Below, in pieces: positions 20,038 through 50,937 of a stretch of 64,000 nucleotides of DNA. Numbering within the stretch: position 1 is the first letter of the stretch; the number at the start of each line of letters is the position of its first letter. Source of the DNA: Phaeosaccion multiseriatum (Eukaryota > Protista > Ochrophyta, other classes); contig OZ218957.1 in the NCBI GenBank assembly GCA_965112735.1, forward strand, positions 310,001 through 374,000, read 5' to 3'. The position numbers and the translations under genes were made by a program. The notes below the pieces were generated by a model that was given only the letters and a program-made list of their open reading frames with translations, had not been told where the DNA came from and did no database searches.

Positions 20038-21675
20038 TGCGTGTTTGTGTGTGTGCGTGCGTGTGTGTGAGGGGGTGTAGGAGGAGGGGGTGGAGGCTGG
20101 GCGTGTGAGGATGTAGGGGTGTGAGTGAGGGGTGTGGGTGAGGGGTATGGGTGTGAGTGAGGGGGTGTCCTCCCACGCCACCCACATCAGAAGACAAGAG
20201 CCTGACTCCCATCCACTGCCATCCTCCCTGTCCTCCCTGTCCCATCCGCTGCCATCCACAGGTGGACTACACGACCGCTATCTTGGGCGAGTCCAATGTG
20301 CGTGTGCGCACCATCGACGGAGAAGTCGACATTCGCCTCCCCAAGGGCAGCCAGGTAGGGAAGGTAGCGAGGGTAGCGAGGGTAGGGAGGGTAGGGAGGG
20401 TAGGGAGGGGAGGGAGGAAGAAGATGCAGAGAGGGAGGGACAGAGGCAGAGAAAGAAGGGGCCAAGAGGGAGAGAGAAAGAGGGAAGAGGCAGAGAGGGA
20501 AGGGGCAGATAGAAGGGAGGTTTGAGGGAGAGAGAGCGGGGGGGGGGGGGTAGCGAGAGAGAAAGGGCAGAGAGACCTTTGGGCAGATGGAGGTGAAACC
20601 GTCTTCCCAGATGCTGCTTTCCTTTCAACTGATTTGAACTGGCACTCGAACTCAAGTCGACTATCTCCAACTATGTAACCGTCCCCCTCCAGCCCGGCAC
20701 GGTGCTGCGCATCAAAGGCAAGGGCGTGCCCGAGCTGACGGACGAGAGCCGCAGAGGGGACCACTTCGTCAGCATCAAGGTGGACATTCCCTCCTCCGCT
20801 GACCTTAACCCCGACGAGGTGGAGCTGCTGCGGGAGCTCAGCCAGATGAGCATGAGGAGGTAGGAGGAGGGGCGCGGGGGGGGGTAGGTGTGGCAGATGA
20901 GCACCAGGAGGTAGTAATCGGCCCCTGACAAGGTTCTGAGGCGACCCAGGTTCCAGGTTCTGGGGGAAAGCCATGCAATAAGGCAATGATAAGGGCCAAG
21001 GCTGCTCTGCCAAGCCTCGCCAGCGGGCCAGGTTCCAGCTTCTGGCCTGGGTCGCCTCAGGACCTTGTCAGGGGCCGATAGTAAGACTTACAGTTACAAG
21101 GGTCTGGGGCAGAGGCATCAAGGAGGAAGGAGGCCGGGTGACTCTCAAGAGGCAGGGGGGCTGCCCGACAGGACAGCGCTCATTGACACCCCGTGTACCT
21201 CTGGACACCTCCGGCGGAGCCCATCGATGTTGATGGAGTATCGTTTCGATGTTGATGGAAGATCGATCATCGATGTTGATGGGAATATCGATCATCGATG
21301 TTGATGGAATATCGATGGAGAGATCGTACTCCTGACATACATGCCTTTCCCTATACACCTCTCTCTCTGTCTTTCCCTCTCTATTTCTCTCTCCCCCCCC
21401 CCCTATCTCTCCCTCTATCTCTCCCTCTCTCTCTCTCTCTCTTGTCTCTCTCTCTCTCTCTCTCTAGGAGGAAGAATGAGTGGGCAGCGGCGAGAGAGGC
21501 GGAGGAGGCGCGGGCAGAGGCCAAGCGAGAGGCGGCAGAACACATGAAGGTCAACTCCACCACTGCCCAGGCCACAGACAGGGGCGGGGTGAGCACCATC
21601 AGCACCAAGAACGGGGGGGCGACGGTGGACAACAAGAAGAAGGGGGGGTTCTTCAAGGATGTGTTTGGCTTATAG
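16438..21675 (+). CDS. dnaJ: Type I DnaJ/Hsp40 chaperone, probably plastid-targeted, ~10 exons
   Basis: NLYEVLGV...[13 protein letters not shown]|DVN (HPD), G/F-rich region with DIFDSFFG, four CxxCxGxG repeats, C-terminal [11 protein letters not shown]...GEGDAG, GKGVP..RGDHFV; N-terminal SSLAFV bipartite-like signal. Confidence 0.92.
17736..17937. repeat. 11-bp minisatellite (CCTTCACCAGT)n in a DnaJ intron
   Basis: Direct tandem copies without spacers. Confidence 0.9.
20918..21078. mobile_element. MITE family A (161 bp), 33-bp TIRs, 6-bp TSD TAGTAA, in last DnaJ intron
   Basis: TCGGCCCCTGACAAGGTTCTGAGGCGACCCAGG matches the reverse complement of the right end at 32/33; TAGTAA at 20912-20917 and 21079-21084; related copy at 37258. 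Confidence 0.93.
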
Positions 21676-24287: not shown

Positions 24288-24491
24288 TCGGGCCCCCGCG
24301 AGGTTTCTCTGCCCCCCGATAAGCAGAAGAAGCCAGAGGCGGCCTGCGGCCGAAAGCCGAGAAGCCAGAGGCGGCCTAACAGCCGAGAAGCCGAGAAGCC
24401 AGCGCTGACCTGCGGCCAGAAGCCCGAAGCCCGGAGGGGGCTACGGCCAATCGAAGAAGCCCGGAGCCAGAGAAACCTCGCGGGGGGTCGA
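24288..24491. mobile_element. MITE family B (204 bp), ~24-bp TIRs, 6-bp TSD CACAAA
   Basis: Left TCGGGCCCCCGCGAGGTTTCTCTG vs right-end reverse complement TCGACCCCCCGCGAGGTTTCTCTG; CACAAA at 24282-24287 and 24492-24497; internal GAAGCC repeats; second copy at 37438. Confidence 0.92.
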
Positions 24492-37257: not shown

Positions 37258-37430
37258 CCGGCCCCTGACAAGGTTCTGAGGCGACCCAGGTTCCAGATTC
37301 TGGCCGGCGCCAGCTGACCAAGTTCCAGGCTCTGACCGGCGCCAGCCGGCCAGGTTCCAGGTTCTGGGGGAAAGCCATGTAGTAAGGCAATGATGAGGGC
37401 CAAGGCTGCTCTGCCAAGCCTCGCCAGCGA
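37258..37430. mobile_element. MITE family A, second copy (right TIR mostly deleted), 6-bp TSD CGAGTG
   Basis: Left end CCGGCCCCTGACAAGGTTCTGAGGCGACCCAGG and internal body match 20918-21078; ends in ...CGA; CGAGTG at 37252-37257 and 37431-37436. Confidence 0.85.
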
Positions 37431-37437
37431 CGAGTGA

Positions 37438-37692
37438 TCGGCCCCCCGCGAGGTTTCTCTGGCCCCCGATAAGCAGAAGCCAGAGGCGGCCTGCGGCCGA
37501 AAGCCGAGAAGCCAGGGGCTGGGCTGCGACCAGCAGAAGCCAGTCACCAGCCAGCCAGCCAGCGGGGAAGAGAGGCGGCCTACAGCCGAAAACCGAGAAG
37601 CCAGCGCTGGCCTGCGGCCAGAAGCCCGAAACTAGGAGGGGGCTACTGCCCGCCCAGAAGCCAGGAGCCTGAGAAACCTCGCGGGGGGGCGA
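37438..37692. mobile_element. MITE family B, second copy (255 bp), 6-bp TSD GAGTGA
   Basis: TCGGCCCCCCGCGAGGTTTCTC...GAGAAACCTCGCGGGGGGGCGA; GAGTGA at 37432-37437 and 37693-37698; body homologous to 24288-24491. Confidence 0.9.
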
Positions 37693-37699
37693 GAGTGAG

Positions 37700-38790
37700 G
37701 AAGTGAAAGTGAGGGGAGTGAGGGAGGGGTGGGAGGGAGGGACGGAGGGAGGCAGAGGGGGTGGGAGGGAGGGAAGGAGGGAGGGAGTGAGAGGGAAGAG
37801 GGAGTGAGTGAGTGAGTGAGTGAGTGAGTGAGTGAGTGAGTGAGTGAAGGTGGGAGAGAGGGAGAGAAGGAGAGAGGGAGGGAGGGAAGGAGGGAGGGAG
37901 GGAGGGAGGGAGGGAGGGAGGGAGGGAGGGAGGGAGGGAGGGAGGGAGGGAGGGAGGGAGGGAGGGAGGGAGGAGGGAGGGAGGGAGGGAGGGAGGGAAG
38001 GAAGGAGGGAAGGAGGGAGGGAGGGAGGGAGGGAGGGAAGGAAGGAGGGAAGGAGGGAGGGAGGGTGGGCGAGCCAGGGGGTGAGTGCGTGAGTAGCGGG
38101 TGAGTGAGTGAGTGAGTGAGTGTGAGTGAGTGAGTGAGTGAGTGAGTGAGTGAGTGAGTGAGTGAGTGAGTGCGTGAGTGAGTGAGTGAGTGGGTGAGTG
38201 AGTGGGTGAGTGAGTGGGTGAGTGAGTGGGTGGGTGAGTGAGTGAGTGAGTGAGTGAGTGAGTGAGTGGGTGGGTGAGTGAGTGAGTGAGTGAGTGAGTG
38301 AGTGAGTGAGTGAGTGAGTGAGTGAGTGAGTGAGTGAGTGAGTGAGTGAGTGAGTGAGTGAGCGAGTGAGTGAGTGAGAGAGGGAGGGAGGGAGGGAGGG
38401 AGACGCCGGCGGCGGTAGGAGTTAGCGGTAGGGAGTTAGCGGTAGAACGTCCGGCCAATCGTATTTTTTGTTCCTTTCTTCGCGTGCCCTGCCTCTGATC
38501 TCAGTCAGAATTTGCAGATTCAGAACAGGTCAACAACTGACATTTGGGAGTGAGTGAGTGAGTGAGGGAGGGAGTGAGTGAGTGAGTGAGTGAGTGAGTG
38601 AGAGAGTGAGTGAGTGAGTGAGTGAGAGAGGGAGGGAGGGAGGGAGGGAGACGCCGGCGGCGGTAGGAGTTAGCGGTAGGGAGTTAGCCCCCCCCCCCCC
38701 CCGTATTTTTTAACCCTTTTCTTCGCGTGCCCTGCCTCTGATCTCAGTCAGAATATGCTGATTCGGAACAGGTCAACAACTGACATTTTC
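37700..38790. repeat. Compound (GAGT)n/(GGGA)n microsatellite field with a ~250-bp tandem duplication
   Basis: Unique block AGACGCCGGCGGCGGTAGGAGTTAGCGG...AACAGGTCAACAACTGACATTT occurs at ~38401-38545 and ~38649-38790. Confidence 0.85.
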
Positions 38791-39435
38791 ATTACCTCTC
38801 CCCCCCCCCCCAGGGAGGGACGACCTAGTGAGTGAAGCAATGAGTAAGTGGATGCGTGCGTATGTGCATGGGTACTGAAAATACAATTCAATTGAACGTT
38901 TTTGAGTGAGTAGGGCACGTGCGTGAGCGGGGGGTAGAGTTCATCGAGCGCCCCTGCTCCACACCCAGTCCACACCCGCTCTCCCAAAAAACAAAAACAA
39001 AAACGCGGCCCGGCCCGAAACACGGCAAACTTGACACGGTGGGCACGGCCAAATCATCGACCCCTGACGTGCTATTATGCTATCTGCTATCGCCGGCGCC
39101 AGCCGGCGTGCTATCTGCTATTGCCGGCGCCAGCCGGCGTGCTATGTGCTATCGCCGGCGCCAGCCGGCGTTTTGTGCTATTCGCCCCCCCGGGGTCGGG
39201 GGTGGGAGGGTGCGCGTGCGGGGGGCTAGGAGCGGAGGAAGCAACTCACACGTGTTTCATTGCCATTAATTCGCGTCAGTTCTTGTATAGTATGCCTAAG
39301 GGAGTATATCAAGGTCCACCCTCTGCCTGGCCTGGCTGACCTGCTGCCCGTGCACCCCTACCTCTCCGCCCTGTGATTGACTGGCTCTCCGCTAGCTCAG
39401 CCGGCGGACGGCCCGATCGACATTGTGCTCGCCAA

Positions 39436-42400
39436 TCAGTCACTTTTACCACTAGGGCAGGCAGCATTCACTCCGTCACAATACCAGTCCCCTTCAGGAA
39501 GCGTAGAGAGGGGAGGGGTCAGGCAGTACGTGTGAAACTCCTCATCGCAGCCGTCACATAGCAACATTTTGTCGTGGTCAACATCTTTCTGACAGACTAG
39601 ACATGCAGTGGCTTCGCTGGAGCTAGAGTCTGCTGCTTTTGCCGTGCCACGAGACAAAGCCCCATAACTCTCGGGCTTGTTTACCGTGCGCCCACGTGAG
39701 GACATCGCCCCCACCACCTTTCCGATGATGTTCTTGCGCAGTGTTCTCAGGTTCAGCGCCTCCTGCTCGCCATCACTGCTATCGTCCTCAGACATGTCCT
39801 CTCCCATGTGCACGCTTGGGTCGGGGGGGGCGTATCCCATCGCCTTGGCCACCTCTTGGCCCTCCGCCTCTCTGTTGACAATCTGCTTGCACTCCTCGTG
39901 CTGCTCCTCCGTGATGGCAAACCTCCGAAGCCTTCTCTGCGCGCACACCCCTCCTGAAGCTGCATGTGAGCCTTCGATGTACATTGCTTCGTGGTAGCGG
40001 GGCAATGCGCCATAAATGGCAGCACAAGACACAGAAGCCTCTTTCCCGCCGTCGACTTCGTAGACGACTGCTGCAGCCCCATCCCCGTCCTGGGACTCGT
40101 CGGTAGAGTCCTGTTCAGCGACGTGAAAGTATGAAACACCAGGCTTTGCCGGAACCACCTTCTGCTTGGAGCCTCGTCCCTTCTTCGAGACGATCACCTC
40201 CTTCCGAAGATCGACGCGAAGCTGTGCAAGAAAAAAGCTCTCCTCCGACCCCTTGTCTGCCCTGACTATCACAACGTCATTTGCCCTGTAGAGAATGCGA
40301 GTTCGGACGGATTCACCGGTCTTCCGTCCTTTCTGTCCGCGCTTCCTCGCTCCCGAGCTCTCATGCAAGCGCGACAGGTATCCACTCGGGTCGTTGCTTT
40401 GCGCAGAGTTGGGAGCAAACGCCCCCGAACGCGGGGCCGCTCCAACATTGTACTTCCTCTTGTTGGTTACACGCTGCTGCGGAACCTTCCTAAGACGAGC
40501 CGCCGCATTGCGAAGCGTCTGCGTGTCCTTCTTGCGCTGCTTCCGTTGCCCTTCGTCAAGCTTCTCCGCTACCCTTGGTCGCTTCAACACGGGTGAAGCC
40601 ACCAATCTGCTCTCGTTTTGCTCCAGCTGGTATCCCGCCCTGAGCTTTCGACCGCTGCTGTTGACGCTGCTTGTGCAGTAGGCAAAACCCATGCTGGGGT
40701 TGGCCTTCTTCGCAGCCTCAAGCATCACAAGGCCCCTTCTTCGGGCATACTCAAGAGCGTCTGGAACATCCTGGCGGCCTTCCCTTTGCTTCGTGAAGAA
40801 AGTCTCAACATTGAGGGTCAAAACGCTCCTCATCTGCATCTTCTCCACGATGCCGCGAGGCACTCCCTGCTGACGGAAATGAGCGAGGAAGCATCAAGCA
40901 AGGAGCGAACAGCGAAGCCGTGAGACGAAAGGGCAAGGCTGATTTCCAAACGCACGCGCCCACGGACACGGACATTTTTACTCACGCACTCACGCACACA
41001 CACGCACACAGCCATGGGGAGCACCCCCTTCTCACCTCTGCAAGCATCCGATGTAGCATCCGAGGTAGTGCCTGCAGGCTCGCCTTGATAGCACCTCGAA
41101 CTTCGCGTGATGGCATTCCTTCAGGGCCCTGGAGAGAGACCAGGGATTTGCCTGTGGCAGCTGATATCGCTTTCCCCATGTGACTGAGAGCCAAGTCGAC
41201 CACATGAAGCTTGGCAATGCTCTCCTCCATCGTGCGTGCGTTGTTTTGCATGTCTTTGCCATTCTCATCCAAGTCTTCGCCCTGGAGCTGATACGCCTCA
41301 CTCAACATCCGTTGTAGTGGGATGAGGTGCTGGGCGTAGACGTAGCAGTCCGAGATCATTCGAATGCACTGGTTTCCAGTGTCGGACAAGAAGAAAGCGT
41401 TGTACACGAAGCAGCCGAACGTAGGTCTGAACAAAGGTACTTTCGATGCCGTACCGCTGGCAGTGCTCTCTCCGGGTTCTGTGTTTCCCTGTCCGCCCAT
41501 CAGCACGGATGATCCCTTCCAGCTTAGCACCCCACTGTCACGACGAAGGAGAACCTTGACAAGCGCATGCAAACCTTCATCTAGCATGAGGATGACGATC
41601 ATATCTTCATCATCGTATGCACCGGGTGGGGCCAACGTGAGTCCACAAGGCTGAGTCCCCACGTGAGACTTCACGCACGTGAGGTGTGCGCGCCTTGGCT
41701 TCTCAACAGTACCATCTTCCTCGTCATCAGTCAGAGCCATGAGTGTATCTCCGTCATTGCCACTGCCACCCTCTGGTCCTCCGGCACGTTCCACATTGCC
41801 CTCCCAGACAAAAAGCGAGCTGTCGGCGATGCAGGCAACGCAGTCATGCGAGAGTGCTGTGAGGCCCGCAGGTCCCTTGGGTAGGTCACACAGCTTCTCG
41901 CTCACAGGTGCAAAAGGGTTGCCAGCGTCAAATGAGAGCCGGTGTAGTGCTCCCCCCCCGCCAGGTTCCTCTTGGGTGACAAAGAGGTCGAACGCGCGCT
42001 CAGAGGACACGGCAAGCGCAATGGCAACGGGGCAACGGATGCCCTCCTCTTCTCTCTCCTCGAGGACATTCTCCTCAGAAGTGCAACGCTCCTGGATCCG
42101 ACGGACCAAGGGCACTGCCTTCAAATTCAAATGCCGTTGCTGAGTCTGTCTCCCCCGACCACGCGCTGCTACATGCCCGTCCGGTTGCTGGTCGTCGTCA
42201 TCATCATCGTCGCCCTCCTCCGCCGCCGCGCGGGATCCCCTGTTTCCTGGAAGAGCGGCCAGCACATGCACCACCCAAATCTGATTCGCTCCACTGTCAC
42301 ACATGTACACGTAGTCGCCAACCACGACGAGAGACCCAAGACTCTGGAAGCAGTCGTCTCGCAGAACAACCTCTGTGGTACAAGGCACATGATGGGCCTT

Positions 42401-44718
42401 GAGCATGCGCAGATGCCTGCCTGAACGATCGGCGTTGAAGATCATGCCAGAGCCATGATGGTAGCCCATACCAGTCGGCTTCTGAGTCTGCGAGGCCATG
42501 TTCTGATGCCAGAAACGCCACGGCTCCGGGCACACGGTCACCCCCACGAGAGCACGGCGCTTCTCCCGCTCCTCCTCTGAGAGTAGAGCCAACTGCAGAG
42601 ACGCCGTCGTAACAGCGATTGCGCTCTCCACTGAGAAAGGATCCTTGTTTTCAATGGCGTCAAGGCCAACATTGGCTTGTACTGCTTCACTTCGAGCCGG
42701 GTCCAGATCGTGGAATCTGGCGCGAAGAGTTCGCAGTCCGACTAGCCAGCCCTGGCAGACGACCCACCAATTGAATGTCGTAGCACGAACACACTTTACA
42801 AGGTGAGCCCCGTCAGGCAGTGCCTCATACCACCCCAGGGGGTCGTCCTCTCCGAGGGTTCTTGCCGCCATTTTCCGAATGAAGGCAAGCTGTGCGCCAT
42901 TACAGTCTGTTGAGATGCACAATGGTCGGAGACTCTTGCACACGAGCCCTTTCCTCTTGCACCTCGAGCAGACTCTGCTGGAGAACTGAGTCGCGCAAAC
43001 GCACTCACTTTCACCGCAAGGACCCTCCCCTCCGGTGGGACAAGCTTGGTGGCAATCACACGCCTCGCCCATCTCCACCCACGAGGGGTTCTCCCCCGTC
43101 AGAATCCGCTGCCAGAAAAGCTCGAGACAAGGGATGCAAACACGCAGCGCCTTCATGATTTCGGTCACGCTCGCGGCAACACTTTTGTAGTCACCCCCTG
43201 CGGTGTGAAGCTGAAAACCGATGGAGCCCGTGTATGCCCCTTTCAGATCCATCATCATAACTTCCATCATCTCGGAACCCAGCTTAGGTGCGTCCTCGTC
43301 TCGCAGCTGGAACAGAACGAGTAGCGATAAGGGAGGGTTGACAGGAGGCGAAGCAAAGGCGGGGCTGCAGCGTGAGCGAGCGAGCGAGGAGGCGTGATTA
43401 AGATTGACGATGGATCAACAGTGATTCTGCCCCGAAAGATCAGTGGGAAGGAGGGGACGCCACGCACCTGAGCATCAGACTTTTCCAGTATTGCCTTCGC
43501 CTGCTCCAGTGTTGTATTTCCAAACTGATGTGCATTGCCCCAATTGGTTTGGCTGGTTGTATCAGTATGATGGCCCTTGGCAATGACGAAGCCATCCATT
43601 TTGACAGTCACGGGAACCACAATCTTCTCGTTGCCTTTGTCGCCAAGAGTGTAGGCTTGGTCGGCACAGAAGCGGGCGAAGACATTGACGACGTTGATAA
43701 TGTCTTCGACTTGCAGACCGTACCTCTTGATTAGGCCAGGCCTGCGCCTAATGAGTGCTCTCGGATGAAAGCCGCCTGTGTTCGCCCTGCGGAAGTAGTC
43801 CTTCATGGCCTGGTCCCTGGAGACGTTGGGGCCACGAACCTTCTTTCTGCGGGGTGCCCCATAGGAGAGCATGGAGCATGCTGAACCAAATACGTTCTGC
43901 TGGGTCTCATTAAACTGTCGCAGCGTCTCGTAGCCATTGAGCTGCTTGCTCGCGGCCACAGTCTGACGCCTGGACCAAAGGCCGCTGTTCATGACCCAAC
44001 GATGCACCGTTTGATACATGAAGTGACTCCGAGTAAAGTGCCCTCGATCAAGATGGAATTGGATCGCAAAGGGAACAATGTCGACATCGTTTACGTCCCG
44101 GGTAAGCTCTACACGCCCGCTGTCCGCGTCTTCCGTCACAGCCACCCGCCCATGGTCTTCTTCTGTCGCGGACGAGCCCGCGGCGCCCATCGCCTTTGTT
44201 TGTGGCCAAATGTGAAACGGCAGAATCTTTATTGGCTTATAGCTGGCTGGGCCCATGGCTGGGCCCCACTGGTTCAAAAGTCCTTCATGTCTGGCCGCGA
44301 TGGAGGGAGGAGTTGGGGGGGGGGGGGCGACTACTACAACAGCAGGAGAGGCACGCCAAGTCCAGTTGGCAGCAGGAGTCGGAGCCGGGAGAAGGCCCCT
44401 GAGAGGGCGAGGAGAGGGAGGAGTGCCAGCAGGAGTTGGAGCAGGGAGAAGCACAGTGAGAGGAGGAAGCGAGGGAGAAATGCCAGCAGGAGTCAGAGTA
44501 GGGGGAAGGACACCGAGAGGAGGAGGGCAGGGAGAAGTACCAGCAGGAGTCGGAGCCGACCCAGATCCGGAGGAGGAGGAGGGAGGAGGGAAGGAGAAAA
44601 GGGTCGAAGCAAAGGGAGACGGGGCCGCAGTCCCAGCGAAAGAGGATTCCCAGCAGGCGCGAGGAAAATGCGTCGGAACCAAAGTCCCAGCGACAGGGGA
44701 GTACGCCGAAGCAGCCAT
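39436..44718 (-). CDS. P-element/THAP9-like DDE transposase with Cys cluster, NHL beta-propeller insert, BAH-like domain and PHD finger (exons 44718-43468, 43306-41036, 40869-39436; up to ~1651 aa)
   Basis: Two phase-0 GT-AG introns join three long ORFs in frame. Motifs in P-transposase order: VTVKMDGF (D), LGSEMMEVMMMDLKGAYTGSIGF, LCISTDCNGAQ (D), LPDGAHLVKCVR (DxxH), NKDPFSVESA, TLNVETFFTKQR..DVPDALEY (E). The true start may be downstream of 44718. Confidence 0.82.
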
Positions 44719-44744
44719 TCACAACACGCTTCTCACGAGCTGGG

Positions 44745-47087
44745 GTGGGAGGAGGGGGGCGGCTTGAGGACACCTATCTCCAGAGTACGGCAACCTTGGC
44801 ATCGTCTTCTGAGGCACAAGACTTCGATTATGCCTTGCCCCTGAGTGCAGGGATGGGACAGGCAAAACCTACCCCTCTCATGTTCGCGCATGTGGGGACA
44901 TTTCCAAGAGGATGCCTCAACCCCGTCGAGGCTGATTTCAGTCTCGGCACATCGGTGTCCTGCAACACGACCGAGCTCTTCGAGACCTTGCCCTACACGT
45001 TCCAGCTGGCTAATGAAGACAAGCGATTCTCCAGCTTCAAGGCCTTCCGTGGACATTTGACCAGCGAATTGCTCTTTCAGACGGAACAAAAGAAGAACGA
45101 CATCACGATCAGAGCCTCCACGGCATTCAGACGTGGCAGAGGGTTGGATACAATCCGCGACGACGTCTCCCTGCGCCGCGTGGTACGTGTCGGGTACAAC
45201 TGCCTCTCGATGTTTGTGCATTGTCTGCTACGGCAGCAACCCTTTCTTAAACCCGCCCCCCCCCCGCCCCTCTCTGTCTCTTTCTCCAACACACACCCAA
45301 TACAGGTGCGCTCGTTCTACACTTTCCCTCCGGGCCGTATCGATCCCGACAAACGGTGGAGACTGGATCTGTACTGCGAGCTACGCCCGAAATCAGGGGC
45401 GAGACAGCAGGAGAACGTGCAAATTTGCCTGTCTTTCCCTACCCAATCTCTGGACAGCGCCACAGATTTTTCGACCCATACCCCACCCAAGAAGGCAGGT
45501 CATCGAGGTGGTGCTGCCCGTGTCAGTGAGACCACCAGTGATAGTGAGGGAGAGAGTGCCGGCGGGACGAAAGGCGGGAAGGCGGGGCAAGAGGGGGCAC
45601 TGACGAAGAAGGCGAAGAGCTGGCTCCACGCGCAAGGAACCAAGTTCTTTTACCTTTTGCGGGAAATGCCTGATGTGGAGATGCAAACTCTCAGCGGAAG
45701 CAAGGTCGGTGATGCAGCAAGCTTCGTGAAGATCCATACGCCAGCTTTGATTCAGCTTGAGGCCAAAGCGAACTTCTCCATCAGACACGCCAGAACATCA
45801 TTGGATATGCTGGTATCTGTTGTGTGCACCAGGCCTGCTTGTCAGAGCGCCGGGAAGGGCAAGTACAAGCCTCAGTGGACTCATTTGTCTGGCGTTAAGC
45901 GCCACAGAGACTCCCACTCATCGAGCGGTCAGAAAAGCATGCAAGCTGCACTCTCTCACTTCCTACTGAAGACGGCGTTGGGGAAGCAGGAGGAGGAGGA
46001 GCAGGAGGAGGAGGAGGAGGAGGAGGATGATGGTGGTGGTGATGATGATGAGGAGGAGGAGGAGGAGGAGGAGGAGGAGGAGCAGGAGGGGGGGGAGGAG
46101 GAGGAGCAGGAGGAGGAGGAGGAGGAGCAGGAGGGGGGCAGCAGCCCTTCTTCCCACCAGAAGAAAAGCAGGGCCATGCCTGCGGCACAATCAGTGGCCG
46201 AAGCTGAGCAGCTGACAGGGGACATGAAGGCGAGGCTGCTTGTCCTCGGCGCTGAGCAGGACATGCACAAGGAAAAGGGGGAGTACACCTCCTTCTTTTT
46301 GGACGCGATGATGACCACTGTATCCGTGAACGGAAACAGGGCACTACTCCCGTGCGCGTCTCTTGGTCACATTTTCAACCCAGCTGTGGAGAACTCCCCC
46401 ATGCCCAACGTGTTGGCGACGGCTCCGAAAGGGTTCCTGCCGAAAGGTTACAGGGAGTCTGGTCTTACAATGACGAAGTGTGAGCTCCTCGTCCTCCCTG
46501 CGAGTTTCAGCGGCCATTTCTCGACTGTCGCTGTCCTTCTACCTACCTCTGCAGCTAGTGACGACGGGGAGGGTGCTATGGCGTACATTCTGCACTTTGA
46601 TACGGTCCGAAATGGGCGCCTCGGTCACCACCCTTCGAAGCGAGTGCTCCAAGCGACGCAGGTGTATGTGGAGAAGGTCATGGAGGACGAAAGAGCCCCT
46701 GGGACGGCAGCCCTCCGATTCCGGCAGGTCTTTGTTGGTGTGCCACAGCAGAAGGCCGGCTCGAATTCTTGCGGTCCGGCAACAGCTCTATTCATGTCGA
46801 AATTGGCTGTGGCAGACACCAGCCCCGTGCGCAAAGTGCTCTATGGTGTTGAGCAAGACAACAGCTGGGAAAGGGACGACGGTGTAGCGATTTTGTCTAG
46901 TGCGGCGGGGGCAAAGAAGGAGACCGTGGACCGCTTCTTGGCCGCGTGTGGGCTGCCGTGTCTGACCTGCGAAGAGTATGAGGCAGAGAGAACTCGCCTC
47001 TTTCGGGCGTACCTGAGCTCCGGGATGCGCAACGGTTCCTTGCCCGACGTTTACAACTCGGCCTTGCATAAGTGCGTCCTGGGTTAG
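44745..47087 (+). CDS. Transposon-encoded Ulp1/SENP-like (C48) cysteine protease with upstream C2H2/BED-like zinc finger and acidic tract
   Basis: ELLVLPASFSGHFSTVAV (His), YILHFDT (Asp), VPQQKAGSNSCGPATALFM (Gln/Cys); CTRPAC...HLSGVKRHRDSH; probable in-frame 123-bp intron 45183-45305; 5' start uncertain. Confidence 0.8.
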   Translation: MGGGGRLEDTYLQSTATLASSSEAQDFDYALPLSAGMGQAKPTPLMFAHVGTFPRGCLNPVEADFSLGTSVSCNTTELFETLPYTFQLANEDKRFSSFKAFRGHLTSELLFQTEQKKNDITIRASTAFRRGRGLDTIRDDVSLRRVVRVGYNCLSMFVHCLLRQQPFLKPAPPPPLSVSFSNTHPIQVRSFYTFPPGRIDPDKRWRLDLYCELRPKSGARQQENVQICLSFPTQSLDSATDFSTHTPPKKAGHRGGAARVSETTSDSEGESAGGTKGGKAGQEGALTKKAKSWLHAQGTKFFYLLREMPDVEMQTLSGSKVGDAASFVKIHTPALIQLEAKANFSIRHARTSLDMLVSVVCTRPACQSAGKGKYKPQWTHLSGVKRHRDSHSSSGQKSMQAALSHFLLKTALGKQEEEEQEEEEEEEDDGGGDDDEEEEEEEEEEEQEGGEEEEQEEEEEEQEGGSSPSSHQKKSRAMPAAQSVAEAEQLTGDMKARLLVLGAEQDMHKEKGEYTSFFLDAMMTTVSVNGNRALLPCASLGHIFNPAVENSPMPNVLATAPKGFLPKGYRESGLTMTKCELLVLPASFSGHFSTVAVLLPTSAASDDGEGAMAYILHFDTVRNGRLGHHPSKRVLQATQVYVEKVMEDERAPGTAALRFRQVFVGVPQQKAGSNSCGPATALFMSKLAVADTSPVRKVLYGVEQDNSWERDDGVAILSSAAGAKKETVDRFLAACGLPCLTCEEYEAERTRLFRAYLSSGMRNGSLPDVYNSALHKCVLG

Positions 47088-47892
47088 TGAAGGAGAGATG
47101 GCTGCCTCGCGAGAGAGGGAGATGGGGGGAGAGGGGAACGCCAAGGTTCGCCCAGCCACCATTGTATTGGTAATATAAGACTGAAGGCTCGCATACTCTC
47201 TGCGCTCGACGTATGCTGATTAGGCAGGCAGCTAGGAGTGGAAAGGCTGTCGCAGGGCGTCTGCTATCGCCGGCGCGACGGGGCGTGCTATCTGCTATTC
47301 GCCGGCGCCAGGAGGCGTGCTATCTGCTATTCGCCGAGTGCAAATAGCATGCTATTGGGCGCCGGGGCGCCCAATAGCATGCTATCGCAGATAGCATAAT
47401 AGCACGTCAGGGGTCGAAAATCACACGCCCCTGATGGAAGCGTTTATCCTAACTCGCCCTTTCGAAAAAGCTTTGAATCGGGCGGTTTCATGATCGTTTC
47501 ATCTTTCGTACCCCCGCGACTATTTGAACAGGCGACCGTTTGGGTGTTTGGGACGGCGGTAGTTTGGGAATAGGCGGTAGGTAGGTAGGAGATCGGCTCG
47601 CGGACCCCTCTGCAGCCTCACTTTGCACCATTACTTTCCATAACTCTGGGGTGCGGTAGCGGTAGCGGTCCAGGGTGTGTGTGTTGAAGTGGGAGCGCAG
47701 CGAGGTTGAGTTGGGAGAGAAAAGATTAGGGGGGGCAGGTACAGTTAGGAGGAATCGGGGGGCGGAGGAGGAAGAATTGCCTGGAGGAGGCAACCGAGAT
47801 CCAACCGACCAACAGGCGAGACGCATTGAATTGCACTGTGGGCAGGGGATGGGACATGACGCCCCAGGTAGATCCTGAGGCCGGCATAGAAC

Positions 47893-47949
47893 ATGGATAG
47901 GGCTTTGCATAGCGCTTTGACCGCGAGGCAGGCCTCTCGTGACCACCAC

Positions 47950-47987
<38 letters not shown>

Positions 47988-48520
47988 CCATCACCACCAC
48001 CACCACCACCCACAGCAGCAGCACCCACAGCAGCATCACCACCACCACCACCAGCAGCAGCCCCAAGAGACCAAACCTCAGCACGAGCAGCATCAGCAGC
48101 AGCAGGCGTTTGGAACACCCGCAGCGGCTGGGGGCGCGATCGGGATGGAGATGGGGATGGGGATGGGGAGCCAAAGCCACGGCCAGGGGCAGCAGCAGGG
48201 GCAGCAGCAGGGCCAAGGCCAGAGCCTCGGCGGAGGTGGGGGCGTGTATGCTTGCATCCCCGTGGGCGCCCCGCTGCACTCGAGCAGCAGCCGCGTGTAC
48301 TACAACTCCGTGCGGCTGCGCGAGGACAGCCCCGTGGTGATATCTGTGGACGATTCGGTGGAGCTGCTGGCGGGCGGCACTCACATGCCGTTCGTTGCGC
48401 TCGTGGAGGCACTTTGGCATGACATGCAGACGAGGGAGTGGAAGGTGCGTGTGTTTGTTCCCCCCTCTCTCCTCCGGCCCTCTCTCTCTCGCTCTCTTGA
48501 CCCATGCATTCACCAAGCCT

Positions 48521-48563
<43 letters not shown>

Positions 48564-50100
48564 ACTGCTGCTTGTACAGGTCCGCACGCGTTGGTTCTAC
48601 CGTGCCGAGGACGTGTCCACAGACGCGCTGCGCTCCTCCTTCCCTCTCGAGGGACCCCCGCATCCCCGAGAGCTCTTTCTCAGCGACACGGACGACGACA
48701 ACGATATTCGCAGCATCATCGCCAAAGTGTCCGTCATCCCGAGTGAGTGCTTCTTGCTGCCGGGGCGGCATTTGTTCCGTGCCTGAGAGGGGAGAGGGGT
48801 CTGGCAGCCGCAGACAAAATCAGGAGGAGGGGTCGGAGGAGGGGAAGGAGTTGGTTGTCCTTCAGTGAGTCCGTCGCCCCCTTGTGCTTGATGCCCACCA
48901 GCGTAGCTCATTGGCTCCCTGCCTGCCTCCTTCCCTCCCTCTCTCTCTGTCTCCCTCCCTCCCCCCCTTCCCCACTTCCTTCAGCTCTGGACCCCCCTGC
49001 CGTGCTGAGCAACGGAGAGTATGTCCTGCGTTGTCTGTACAGCCCACAGACAGCGACTTTCAACCTCCTCCCGCAGCTCGTGCAGCAGCAGGAGCAGCGC
49101 CAGCAGCAGCACGCCATGCAGGCGGCGGGCATGGGGGCAAGCGCGTCATCGGCGAGCGGCAGCAGCGGCGGGGGCGAGGGCGGCGATGAGGCCATGGTGC
49201 CTGTGGCTGAGCGTAGTATGCTTTCCTCGAGCGGCAGGGGGGTGCCCACCTCCGGCAGGGGCAGCAGGGGAAGCACTGATAGCCCCAGCCTGCAGGACAG
49301 TCACAGTCAGTTACAGGGGTCAGATGGACAGACACAGGGGCCGGAGGGGCAAGATGCCAATAAGCAGTCACAAGCACCGGCACTGGCCCCTTCCTCAGCC
49401 AACGCCGCTCGGGAGTCGGGACTGGTACACGACCAAGGGGGCAGCGTGAGTGCTGCGGGGAACGTGGGGAGTGGGGGGGGCGCGACCGTCAATTCGGCAG
49501 ACGCCCCCCCCCCCCGAGCCGCACCCACCGACTCGCACGCGCATTCGCAAGGCCAGGGACAGGGACAGGGACAGGGACAGCAAGCGCCACCACAACCACA
49601 GGGAGGACATGGACAGGTATACACGGCACAGAATCAGGGGCAGGCACAGGGGTCGTTTGGGGCCTCCTTGGAACACGCCAGTCAGATGGTGCGTGTGGAG
49701 GATGGGGAGGACGGGGTGGGCGTGGTGAGGTGGGGTGGATGTGATGCGTGTGGGTGGCGGCTCCTTTCGCAAGGCTTTTTTTCAGAGGACAGTGTGTCAA
49801 AAGTCCAATTGTCAATGCTCCCCTCCGCCCTTTGACCCACGCCATGGCGCCCCTCCGCTCCCCCCCTCCTATGCGATACCATACCACACCATCCCTCCTC
49901 GCAGCGCCTGCACCTGCCAGATCGGAACCCCTCGCCCTTCAAGCGCCAGCGTGGAGCAATCGCGGAGGGCGCCGTGCAGAGCAGTTCTCATAGGGGGGGT
50001 CCCCAGGGGGGCGATGCCCAGGGGGGGGGGTGGAGCAGCAGCGGGGGGCAGCAGCAGCTACAGCAGCATCAGCAGCAGCACCACCACCACCAGCAGCAGG

Positions 50101-50131
<31 letters not shown>

Positions 50132-50303
50132 ACGAGAAAGTTTGAGTTTGAGGGGTAGCCCGGGACCTCCTCAGCCTCACCCTCAACCTCACCCTCAGGC
50201 CCACTCTCAGGGGATGGGCGGCAGCGGGCTTGCTAAGGTAATCCTGCCCCATCCCACGGTTGGCGGGCTCCACCATCAGGGGCCACACGGTATGGGGCAC
50301 GGT

Positions 50304-50367
<64 letters not shown>

Positions 50368-50656
50368 CGCAGCAGCAACAACAATATCAGGCGCAGCAGC
50401 AGGCGGCGCAGCAGGCGGCAATGTACGATCCACAGCGGCACGCCCACGGGCAGGGGCTCGGCCAGGGGCACGGCTTGGGGGGCCAGGGCAACAGCGGGCA
50501 CTTCTTCCAACAGCACGGCCAGCAGCAGCACCAGCAGCACCACCAGCAGCTCGGCATGTACGGCGCACAGCAGCAGCAGCAGCAGCAGCAGCAGCGGCAA
50601 GGGCAAGGAGGACAGGGGCCCTTACTGCAATACCCCCAACACCATGGGCATCACCC

Positions 50657-50702
<46 letters not shown>

Positions 50703-50880
50703 GTGAAGGGCTCCCACCAAGGGAGGGCTCCACCTCCACCCTCCTCCTCCATGCCCTCCTCCACGCGCTGTGTGTACCGCGGGGAGAGCGGGCTCGAGTG
50801 GCGCTCTTACGCCTACCCGGGCATGGCCAACATCGTTGTCAGCCCCGACGGACAGGAGTGAGTGTGTAGGGGGGCAAGGG

Positions 50881-50937
<57 letters not shown>

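Follow-up and report, generated by a model that had tools for sequence, protein, structure and literature searches.

The 64,000-nucleotide stretch of the Phaeosaccion multiseriatum genome analysed here (GenBank assembly GCA_965112735.1, contig OZ218957.1, positions 310,001 to 374,000 of the forward strand; hereafter the window, numbered from its first base) carries an 8,361-bp element at 39057-47417. We have good confidence that this element is an autonomous, recently active class II transposon belonging to a deep, unannotated branch of the P-element/THAP9 (TNP-like) clan. It encodes a transposase of about 1,475-1,500 amino acids on the minus strand and, divergently, an accessory protein on the plus strand. 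The lineage appears to be undescribed, as judged without Repbase and Dfam, and possibly deserves superfamily rank.

The relationship to P transposase emerges from the family to which the minus-strand protein belongs. An exhaustive phmmer search with the N-terminal part of exon 2 retrieved 79 homologue clusters, defined at 50% identity, at E<=1e-3 and 27 at E<=1e-10. All 20 clusters looked up were without a name, 19 deriving from metagenomic or raw-run assemblies and one being a predicted protein of Priapulus caudatus; the family is unannotated and almost all of its members are metagenomic. Four blocks are conserved across it, DG..(k)pG, sDC...Q/N, PD..H..KS and TL.VE..F...R, with the Glu of the last block invariant, and these correspond to motifs shared with P transposase and THAP9: D(E/G)M..k, sD....N/Q, (s/p)D..H..K..RN-like and E.FF...R-like. 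When 43 family cores were scanned singly against Pfam, TNP-like_RNaseH_N (PF21787) matched eight of them (best 4.8e-5), and no other Pfam family was touched by more than one core. A core profile compared with PDB sequences placed P transposase at the top, its aspartate blocks collinear with D230 and D303, at an E-value (0.34) that is weak alone. Word-indexed protein searches with exon 2, the protease region of the accessory protein or the family profile gave nothing useful, the first probably having been swamped by low-complexity words, and PDB sequence searches with single window pieces or a C-terminal core profile gave no match.

Structural comparison gave a clearer answer. Because the full 1,179-residue model of a homologue returned only propellers, the N-terminal core was folded alone, as an AlphaFold (AF2) model of residues 41-553 of homologue P0004 built from a 43-row alignment (predicted local distance difference test, pLDDT, 85.3). 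P transposase and THAP9 are represented by the Pfam families TNP-like_RNaseH_N, TNP-like_GBD and TNP-like_RNaseH_C and by PDB entries 6P5A and 6PE2. In Foldseek searches of the PDB, the core model matched significantly only P transposase (6p5a, 4e-7; 6pe2, 1.3e-6), the next entry being TnsB at 0.15; among Swiss-Prot models, P transposase (2.2e-6) and THAP9 (4.5e-4) were followed by hAT-derived proteins above 0.02. VIA-align returned Z scores of 9.4 and 9.3 for P transposase over 272-281 residues, with HIV integrase (5.6), Transib (5.2) and Hermes (4.2) as runners-up, and the neighbours in an ESM Atlas shape search were TNP-like and THAP9 clusters. The fold match spans P residues 128-428, which comprise the helical DNA-binding region and the N-terminal part of the RNase H domain. 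A first-pass annotation of this DNA, made from the letters alone, had proposed a P-like catalytic core and a fold comparison with P transposase and THAP9 as a check. Run on P0004, that comparison gave a significant P-type match, and the core is upheld by the family motifs, by PF21787 in 8 of 43 cores and by Foldseek, VIA-align and the Atlas, which place P and THAP9 first. The accompanying claim that the element fits no superfamily of terminal inverted repeat (TIR) transposons was too strong; by fold, it is a deeply branching and atypical member of the P/THAP9 clan.

Of the four long open frames in the element, one lies on the plus strand and the other three on the minus strand, where the transposase gene is predicted to comprise three exons (Table 1). 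Exon 1 encodes a helical DNA-binding region and then the initial RNase H strands, which carry the first catalytic Asp in VKMDGF (codon 43594-43596); the fold match to P residues 128-428 takes in this part of the protein. Exon 2 begins with a helical region containing a Cys cluster and the second catalytic Asp in ISTDCNGAQ (codon 42905-42907), and continues with the DGAHLVK motif (His codon 42803-42805) and a six-bladed NHL-type beta-propeller with an acidic loop. Exon 3 holds the catalytic-helix motif LNVETFF...R (Glu codon 40804-40806), then two further conserved parts, a C-terminal helical region and a beta-rich module, and lastly a PHD finger at ~39475-39603. The two aspartates are separated by 176 residues, a distance stretched by a Cys-rich helical insert of ~100 residues. 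Counted from the ATG at 44718, the three acidic residues are D375, D551 and E1196. Metagenomic homologues encoded in a single open reading frame (ORF) align without gaps across both predicted junctions (P0004 and P0013 over intron 1; P0005 and P0004 over intron 2), and homologue N termini fall at spliced positions 174-206. The mechanical ORF extends beyond this point to 44718; its first ~155-176 codons are Pro-rich, overlap a 57-bp repeat and have no counterpart in any homologue. This segment is probably noncoding. Of the uninterrupted long ORFs reported at first pass, the long frames are indeed present, with the reservations that the start of the minus-strand ORF is probably noncoding and that the plus-strand ORF contains a 123-nt intron.

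As in the present protein, the RNase H-fold DDE (Asp-Asp-Glu) core of P transposase and THAP9 comes after a helical DNA-binding region and has a large domain inserted before its Glu-bearing helix. The identity of that domain differs. A family profile retrieved NHL propellers from the PDB (SOQ1, NHLRC2, PknD, TRIM71 and Pizza designs) at about E 1e-16, and four family members matched Pfam NHL. The full-length homologue model (1,179 residues; pLDDT 83.5; predicted template-modelling score, pTM, 0.81) gave a Z score of 30.3 with the NHL domain of TRIM71 and a template-modelling (TM) score of 0.84 with Pizza6. Of the 329 propeller positions in the modelled homologue, 318 were covered by exon 2 of the window in the alignment, and an ESM Atlas search with the same exon yielded an NHL lead; the window sequence alone did not reach NHL chains in the PDB. 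The propeller sits between the DxxH block and the Glu-bearing helix, where P transposase has its GTP-binding domain, and in the homologue model the helix comes after the propeller and a helical bundle. No family member scanned matched Pfam TNP-like_GBD. The GTP-binding insert named at first pass among the features of P-type transposases is thus not borne out, its position being taken by the NHL propeller according to both profile and fold. We found no description in the literature of a DDE transposase with an internal propeller.

Towards the C terminus, residues 421-463 of the exon 3 ORF match the Pfam PHD finger (PF00628) with 45.1 bits (E 1e-11), which exceeds the gathering score of 24, and a C-terminal PHD finger is also present in close relatives. 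This supports one of the chromatin readers proposed previously. The other, a BAH domain, gains no support: no Pfam match was found, and a profile of the conserved region built from 11 sequences matches no PDB BAH chain, so that the region is better described as a conserved, beta-rich module. No THAP domain was matched in the window exons or in the 79 family members; the conserved N terminus opens with a helical region, and an unrecognised upstream exon is possible.

The combination of a DDE core with a propeller and a PHD finger recalls a known recombinase. RAG2 consists of a six-bladed Kelch propeller and a PHD finger and acts with the DDE core of RAG1, which is of Transib type, as in ProtoRAG. 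The present protein has the same set of parts, an RNase H-type DDE recombinase with a six-bladed beta-propeller and a PHD finger, and its likeness to RAG1-RAG2 and ProtoRAG would be one of analogy and not of homology. The DDE lineage is a different one (RAG1 and Transib reach Z scores of only 4-5), the propeller is NHL rather than Kelch, and all parts belong to a single polypeptide whose propeller interrupts the catalytic domain.

The boundaries of the element were read directly from the window. The TIRs extend over 37 nt at 95% identity, the initial 31 nt being perfect and the first mismatch falling at position 32. The 19-nt terminus occurs only twice in the window, at the two element ends, with 0 occurrences expected by chance. 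A repeat scan found no dinucleotide microsatellites within the element, whose own repeats comprise only the subterminal arrays of 31/32-bp units, a tandem 57-bp x3.3 repeat and an AGG tract; such microsatellites are abundant in the flanking host DNA. The subterminal arrays likely serve as transposase binding sites, and the 57-bp repeat region is a probable shared 5' or promoter region of both genes. Direct reading thus confirms the first-pass ends, the 8,361-bp length, the perfect 31-bp TIR and the AAATCA target site duplication (TSD), and the absence of internal dinucleotide microsatellites and the two divergent genes (minus-strand transposase, plus-strand accessory gene) hold as well. A perfect 20-nt palindrome (ATAGCATGCTATTGGGCGCC / GGCGCCCAATAGCATGCTAT) lies at 47344-47385, just inside the right TIR, and has no counterpart at the left end.

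Table 1. Coordinates of the transposon, its genes and related short elements in the window.
Feature	Position	Strand	Details
Left TSD	39051-39056		AAATCA; read directly, identical to right copy
Left TIR	39057-39093	+	Starts TCGACCCCTGACG; first 31 nt match right end perfectly
Left subterminal array	39078-39171	+	3 direct copies of 31-bp unit TGCTATCTGCTATCGCCGGCGCCAGCCGGCG
Transposase exon 3	39436-40869	-	477 codons plus stop at 39436-39438
Transposase intron 2 (predicted)	40870-41035	-	166 nt, GT..AG; in-frame alternative acceptor 3 nt downstream
Transposase exon 2	41036-43306	-	757 codons
Transposase intron 1 (predicted)	43307-43467	-	161 nt, GT..AG
Transposase exon 1, conserved part	43468-44256	-	Start ATG probably 44256 or 44190
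57-bp x3.3 tandem repeat	44370-44556		Between the two divergent genes
Accessory gene	44853-47087	+	First ATG 44853; open frame from 44745
Right subterminal array	47267-47330	+	2-3 copies of 32-bp unit related to left array
Right TIR	47381-47417	-	4-5 different contigs of the DNA runs separate exactly after 47417
Right TSD	47418-47423		AAATCA; read directly, identical to left copy
161-bp MITE	20918-21078		Ends TCGGCCCCTGAC..GTCAGGGGCCGA; TSD TAGTAA
204-bp MITE	24288-24491		Ends TCGGGCCCCCGCGAGG..; internal 32-bp array; TSD CACAAA
MITE, second copy-like member of the 24288-24491 family	37438-37692		TSD GAGTGA

The same type of terminus recurs in the window. Among 110 pairs of TCG(N1-2)CCCC...GGGG(N1-2)CGA tested for identical 6-bp flanks, four had perfect flanks, against 0.027 expected by chance: the autonomous element and three short elements resembling miniature inverted-repeat transposable elements (MITEs). 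The MITE at 20918-21078 shares 11 of 12 terminal bases with the autonomous element. The four target sites (AAATCA, TAGTAA, CACAAA and GAGTGA) are unrelated in sequence. Since four TCG..CGA elements show it, the 6-bp TSD is a property of the group and not an accident of a single insertion. The combination of TCG termini with a 6-bp TSD noted at first pass thus recurs at four elements of the window, the TCGGCCCC terminus being found in a metagenomic relative too.

Several further features lie around these MITEs. At 20910-21085, the sequence G|GTAGTAA...CCGATAG could act as a 171-nt GT..AG intron, a multiple of three in length, that consists of the MITE plus one TSD copy; such TCG..CGA MITEs might create introns. 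In a 32-bp x2.5 array at 37286-37366 (CCAGGTTCCAGGTTCTGACCGGCGCCAGCCGA), the motif found inside the 20918 MITE is joined to the GCCGGCGCCAGCC core that the autonomous element has in its subterminal repeat; the array may be a fragment of another family member. A GAGT/GGGA microsatellite block of ~1.1 kb (37693-38790) begins where the 37438-37692 MITE ends and lies a short way upstream of the point at which the transposon is inserted.

Copy number and expression were addressed by comparing contigs of three sequencing runs over 45000-50900, two being DNA runs of the assembly's sample and the third deriving from another sample; as host exons are joined in it by GT..AG joints, the third run is evidently RNA. 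Word depth over the element exceeded that of flanking host contigs by ~7x in both DNA runs (3,484 versus about 450, and 21 versus about 3), which suggests ~7 near-identical copies. The right subterminal array (47267-47330) reached ~4x the depth of the element body, suggesting that derivatives contribute to it. In the RNA run, the depth of the accessory gene was ~9x that of the neighbouring host gene, with the intron removed. At position 45653, all three runs have T where the window has C, and at 46827 an A is seen in the RNA run alone; these differences fit several slightly different copies, the main transcribed copy being another one. The recent activity supposed at first pass is likely, given the ~7x depth and the contigs diverging exactly after 47417. 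The opposite possibility, that a domesticated or immobile gene pair merely resembles a transposon, could appeal to the single RNA data set, in which no transposase transcripts were seen, and to the distant Priapulus relative, which is annotated as an ordinary gene. It is extremely unlikely in view of the perfect TIRs and TSD, the ~7x flank depth, the several different flanks that follow the exact terminus and the matching MITEs with 6-bp TSDs nearby. To the right of the element, a host gene at 48227-49902 is transcribed, with introns at ~48443-48577, 48743-48984 and 49614-49901 in the RNA contigs, and a short repeat at 49077-49111 shows very high depth in all runs.

The accessory protein starts with a region of weak conservation, after which come a finger-like CX4C..HX3H motif, an acidic stretch and, at the C terminus, a probable cysteine protease of Ulp1/C48-like type (~46260-47084). 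The gene is transcribed and spliced: RNA contigs contain the GT..AG joint of an in-frame 123-nt intron at ~45182-45304, and one contig extends upstream of 45000 by 640 nt or more. In this order, GHFS, LHFD, VPQQ and NSCGP would supply the catalytic H and D, the oxyanion Q and the catalytic C of the protease; these motifs are conserved with the metagenomic relative L001 and partly with L002. ESM Atlas language-model features of residues 470-744 scored 0.94 against Peptidase_C48 clusters (177 shared features); 67 of 100 Atlas matches were C48 clusters, and other top rows were also of the CE clan (C57, YopJ). The second gene of L001 encodes a homologue of this domain (E 6e-8) in which all four residues are kept, and L002 retains a remnant. 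Pfam, PDB sequence (even at E 10) and protease-profile searches of the accessory protein gave no match. From the motifs, the language-model similarity and the L001 homologue, the C terminus is likely to be a Ulp1/C48-like protease; the first-pass identification of a Ulp1 protease is thus probably right, while no hidden Markov model or PDB sequence match accompanies it.

Ulp1/C48 genes ride in other DNA transposons, among them plant Mutator-like elements, CACTA elements and hAT-Ulp1 fusions. With its likely protease, the present element would resemble these TIR transposons, in which a CE-clan Ulp1-like protease forms a second gene or domain, and a structural neighbour of the best Atlas protease match is a hAT transposase-Ulp1 cluster. 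It is unlike them in being P-like, and its putative protease is too divergent for Pfam and is fused to a family-specific N-terminal region. A grapevine survey mentions Ulp1 in cut-and-paste elements (PMC2528002).

Relatives of the whole element, and not of the transposase alone, occur in metagenomes. L001, a 10,965-bp metagenome contig, contains a complete relative with perfect 23-nt TIRs beginning TCGGCCCCGGAC, the TCGGCCCC terminus common to the window element, and subterminal arrays. Its genes are a multi-exon transposase ending in a PHD finger and a divergent two-exon accessory gene ending in the protease; L004 has the same divergent layout. The N-terminal parts of the accessory protein are only weakly alike between the window element, L001 and L004. 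Neither the window TIR nor the L001 TIR had an exact match in the metagenome collection scanned; L001 itself was not recovered there either, so that its sample lies outside that collection. More distant members are L006 (Priapulus caudatus KQ715819.1, annotated as uncharacterised protein XP_014674326.1) and L007 (ENA ERZ25069866, a 917-kb eukaryotic contig), a subgroup with the motifs DGTALKPGLEY, DCEEKNKKAM, PDAVHVGKSLK and VENLHAVSHFKH; the surroundings of the relative in L007 showed no clear element ends.

P elements have CA..TG ends, a 7-8-bp TSD, a THAP domain and a GTP-binding insert. The present element is like them in its 31-nt TIR and in its subterminal repeats, which correspond to the internal or subterminal binding-site-like repeats of P. 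It differs in its 6-bp TSD, its TCG..CGA ends and its second gene, and the protein differs from P transposase and THAP9 in the NHL propeller in place of the GTP-binding domain, the Cys cluster between the aspartates, the C-terminal PHD finger and the lack of any THAP domain found. These departures bear on a second, more doubtful reading, in which the elements form a separate superfamily-level lineage that shares ancestry with P, either as sister to P alone or as sister to P and Kolobok together, with TCG..CGA ends, 6-bp TSD, NHL propeller, Cys cluster and PHD finger as its hallmarks. All P-defining features beyond the core fold are absent or different, profile-to-sequence similarity to P is below significance (E 0.17-0.34), and the family, with its 79 clusters at 50% identity, is both large and ancient and has a distant member in an animal. 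Against this, PF21787 is the sole Pfam family touched repeatedly and P/THAP9 the sole significant fold match, and superfamily rank is a convention that depends on a tree.

Kolobok provides another comparison, through the Cys cluster between the first and second Asp, which has a parallel in some Kolobok lineages, and through the DG at the first Asp in both. Some Kolobok lineages have a zinc finger after the first Asp, and Kolobok shares the DxxH motif. Kolobok elements generate TTAA duplications and have RR..YY termini (PMC9587614), whereas the element and MITEs here have TCG..CGA ends and 6-bp TSDs of unrelated sequence. The Kolobok motifs at the Glu (ES.N) and the second Asp (DNDS) also differ from the VE..F...R and DC...Q/N found here, which are as in P, and Pfam and fold matches go to P/THAP9. 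A Kolobok-related element is therefore very unlikely. Dada elements share the DxxH motif and a TSD range of 6-7 bp with the present family; they have no TIRs and insert only into small nuclear RNA or transfer RNA genes (PMC3706591). The Dada core motifs of the published alignment (KMDSTKK, VDRDCC, LDVWHFMRR and SLESFH) are unlike those of the family, and a search of the Dada dataset for this family's motifs found none. With TIRs present, four unrelated target sites and differing core motifs, membership of Dada was rejected, its probability being negligible.

Several observations weigh against placing the element in the P/THAP9 clan as a mobile, recently active transposon. Of four features that define P, only the core is found, and THAP, the GTP-binding domain and the 7-8-bp TSD are missing. 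The fold evidence comes from homologue P0004, which is ~30% identical, and not from the window's own chain, and TM-scores to P transposase are modest (0.37-0.42). A closer tie to Kolobok, of which no structure has been solved, retains a small probability. Pfam scans of the window's own proteins gave no transposase, NHL or C48 match and recovered the PHD finger only; as Pfam is blind to both transposase and protease in these proteins, both identities needed other routes. The ~7 copies are an estimate, summed contig depth not being a copy number, and the RNA run contains almost none of the sampled words of 39057-42000, the 3' half of the transposase gene. Finally, the flanks of L001 (81-86 and 10814-10819) are not duplicated, reading CTTCAC versus TCATCT; this missing TSD may stem from chimeric assembly of a multi-copy element.

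With a P-type core as the favoured assignment, a course of transposition can be proposed. RNase H-fold DDE transposases cleave at the ends of their element and transfer the 3' OH groups to target phosphates in staggered positions; TSD length follows from the size of this stagger. The transposase would bind the 31-nt TIRs and the 31-32-bp subterminal arrays through its helical and Cys-cluster regions, excise the element and join its 3' ends to the target with a 6-bp stagger, which in this proposal produces the 6-bp duplications at the four elements of the window. Short TCG..CGA MITEs could be mobilised in trans by the same enzyme or a relative. The propeller and the PHD finger would probably tether or license the transpososome through a partner or histone H3 tails, and the accessory protease could plausibly process ubiquitin-like modifiers on host or transposon proteins.

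A broader interpretation can be offered only tentatively. Here the family would be a distinct superfamily-level clade in which an NHL propeller has replaced the GTP insert and a PHD finger has been added, yielding a single-chain counterpart of RAG1 plus RAG2 that reads chromatin to choose or license its sites; the clade would also drive the genome's large population of TCG..CGA MITEs with 6-bp TSDs, some of them maybe intronic.

To our knowledge, P-type transposases are known almost entirely from animals, and GTP regulation through the inserted domain is their hallmark. Exchange of the GTP insert for a protein- or RNA-binding propeller would identify the RNase H insertion site as a swappable regulatory socket. 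The element would provide an apparently active natural system in which to ask how integration by a transposase is linked to chromatin state, a question also posed in the RAG1/RAG2 field. In P. multiseriatum itself, it is a candidate autonomous partner for the genome's many TCG..CGA MITEs with 6-bp duplications, and with it P-like elements would join the transposons that carry Ulp1-type proteases. As 79 clusters of the family lack annotation, naming it would improve the repeat annotation of protist and environmental genomes.

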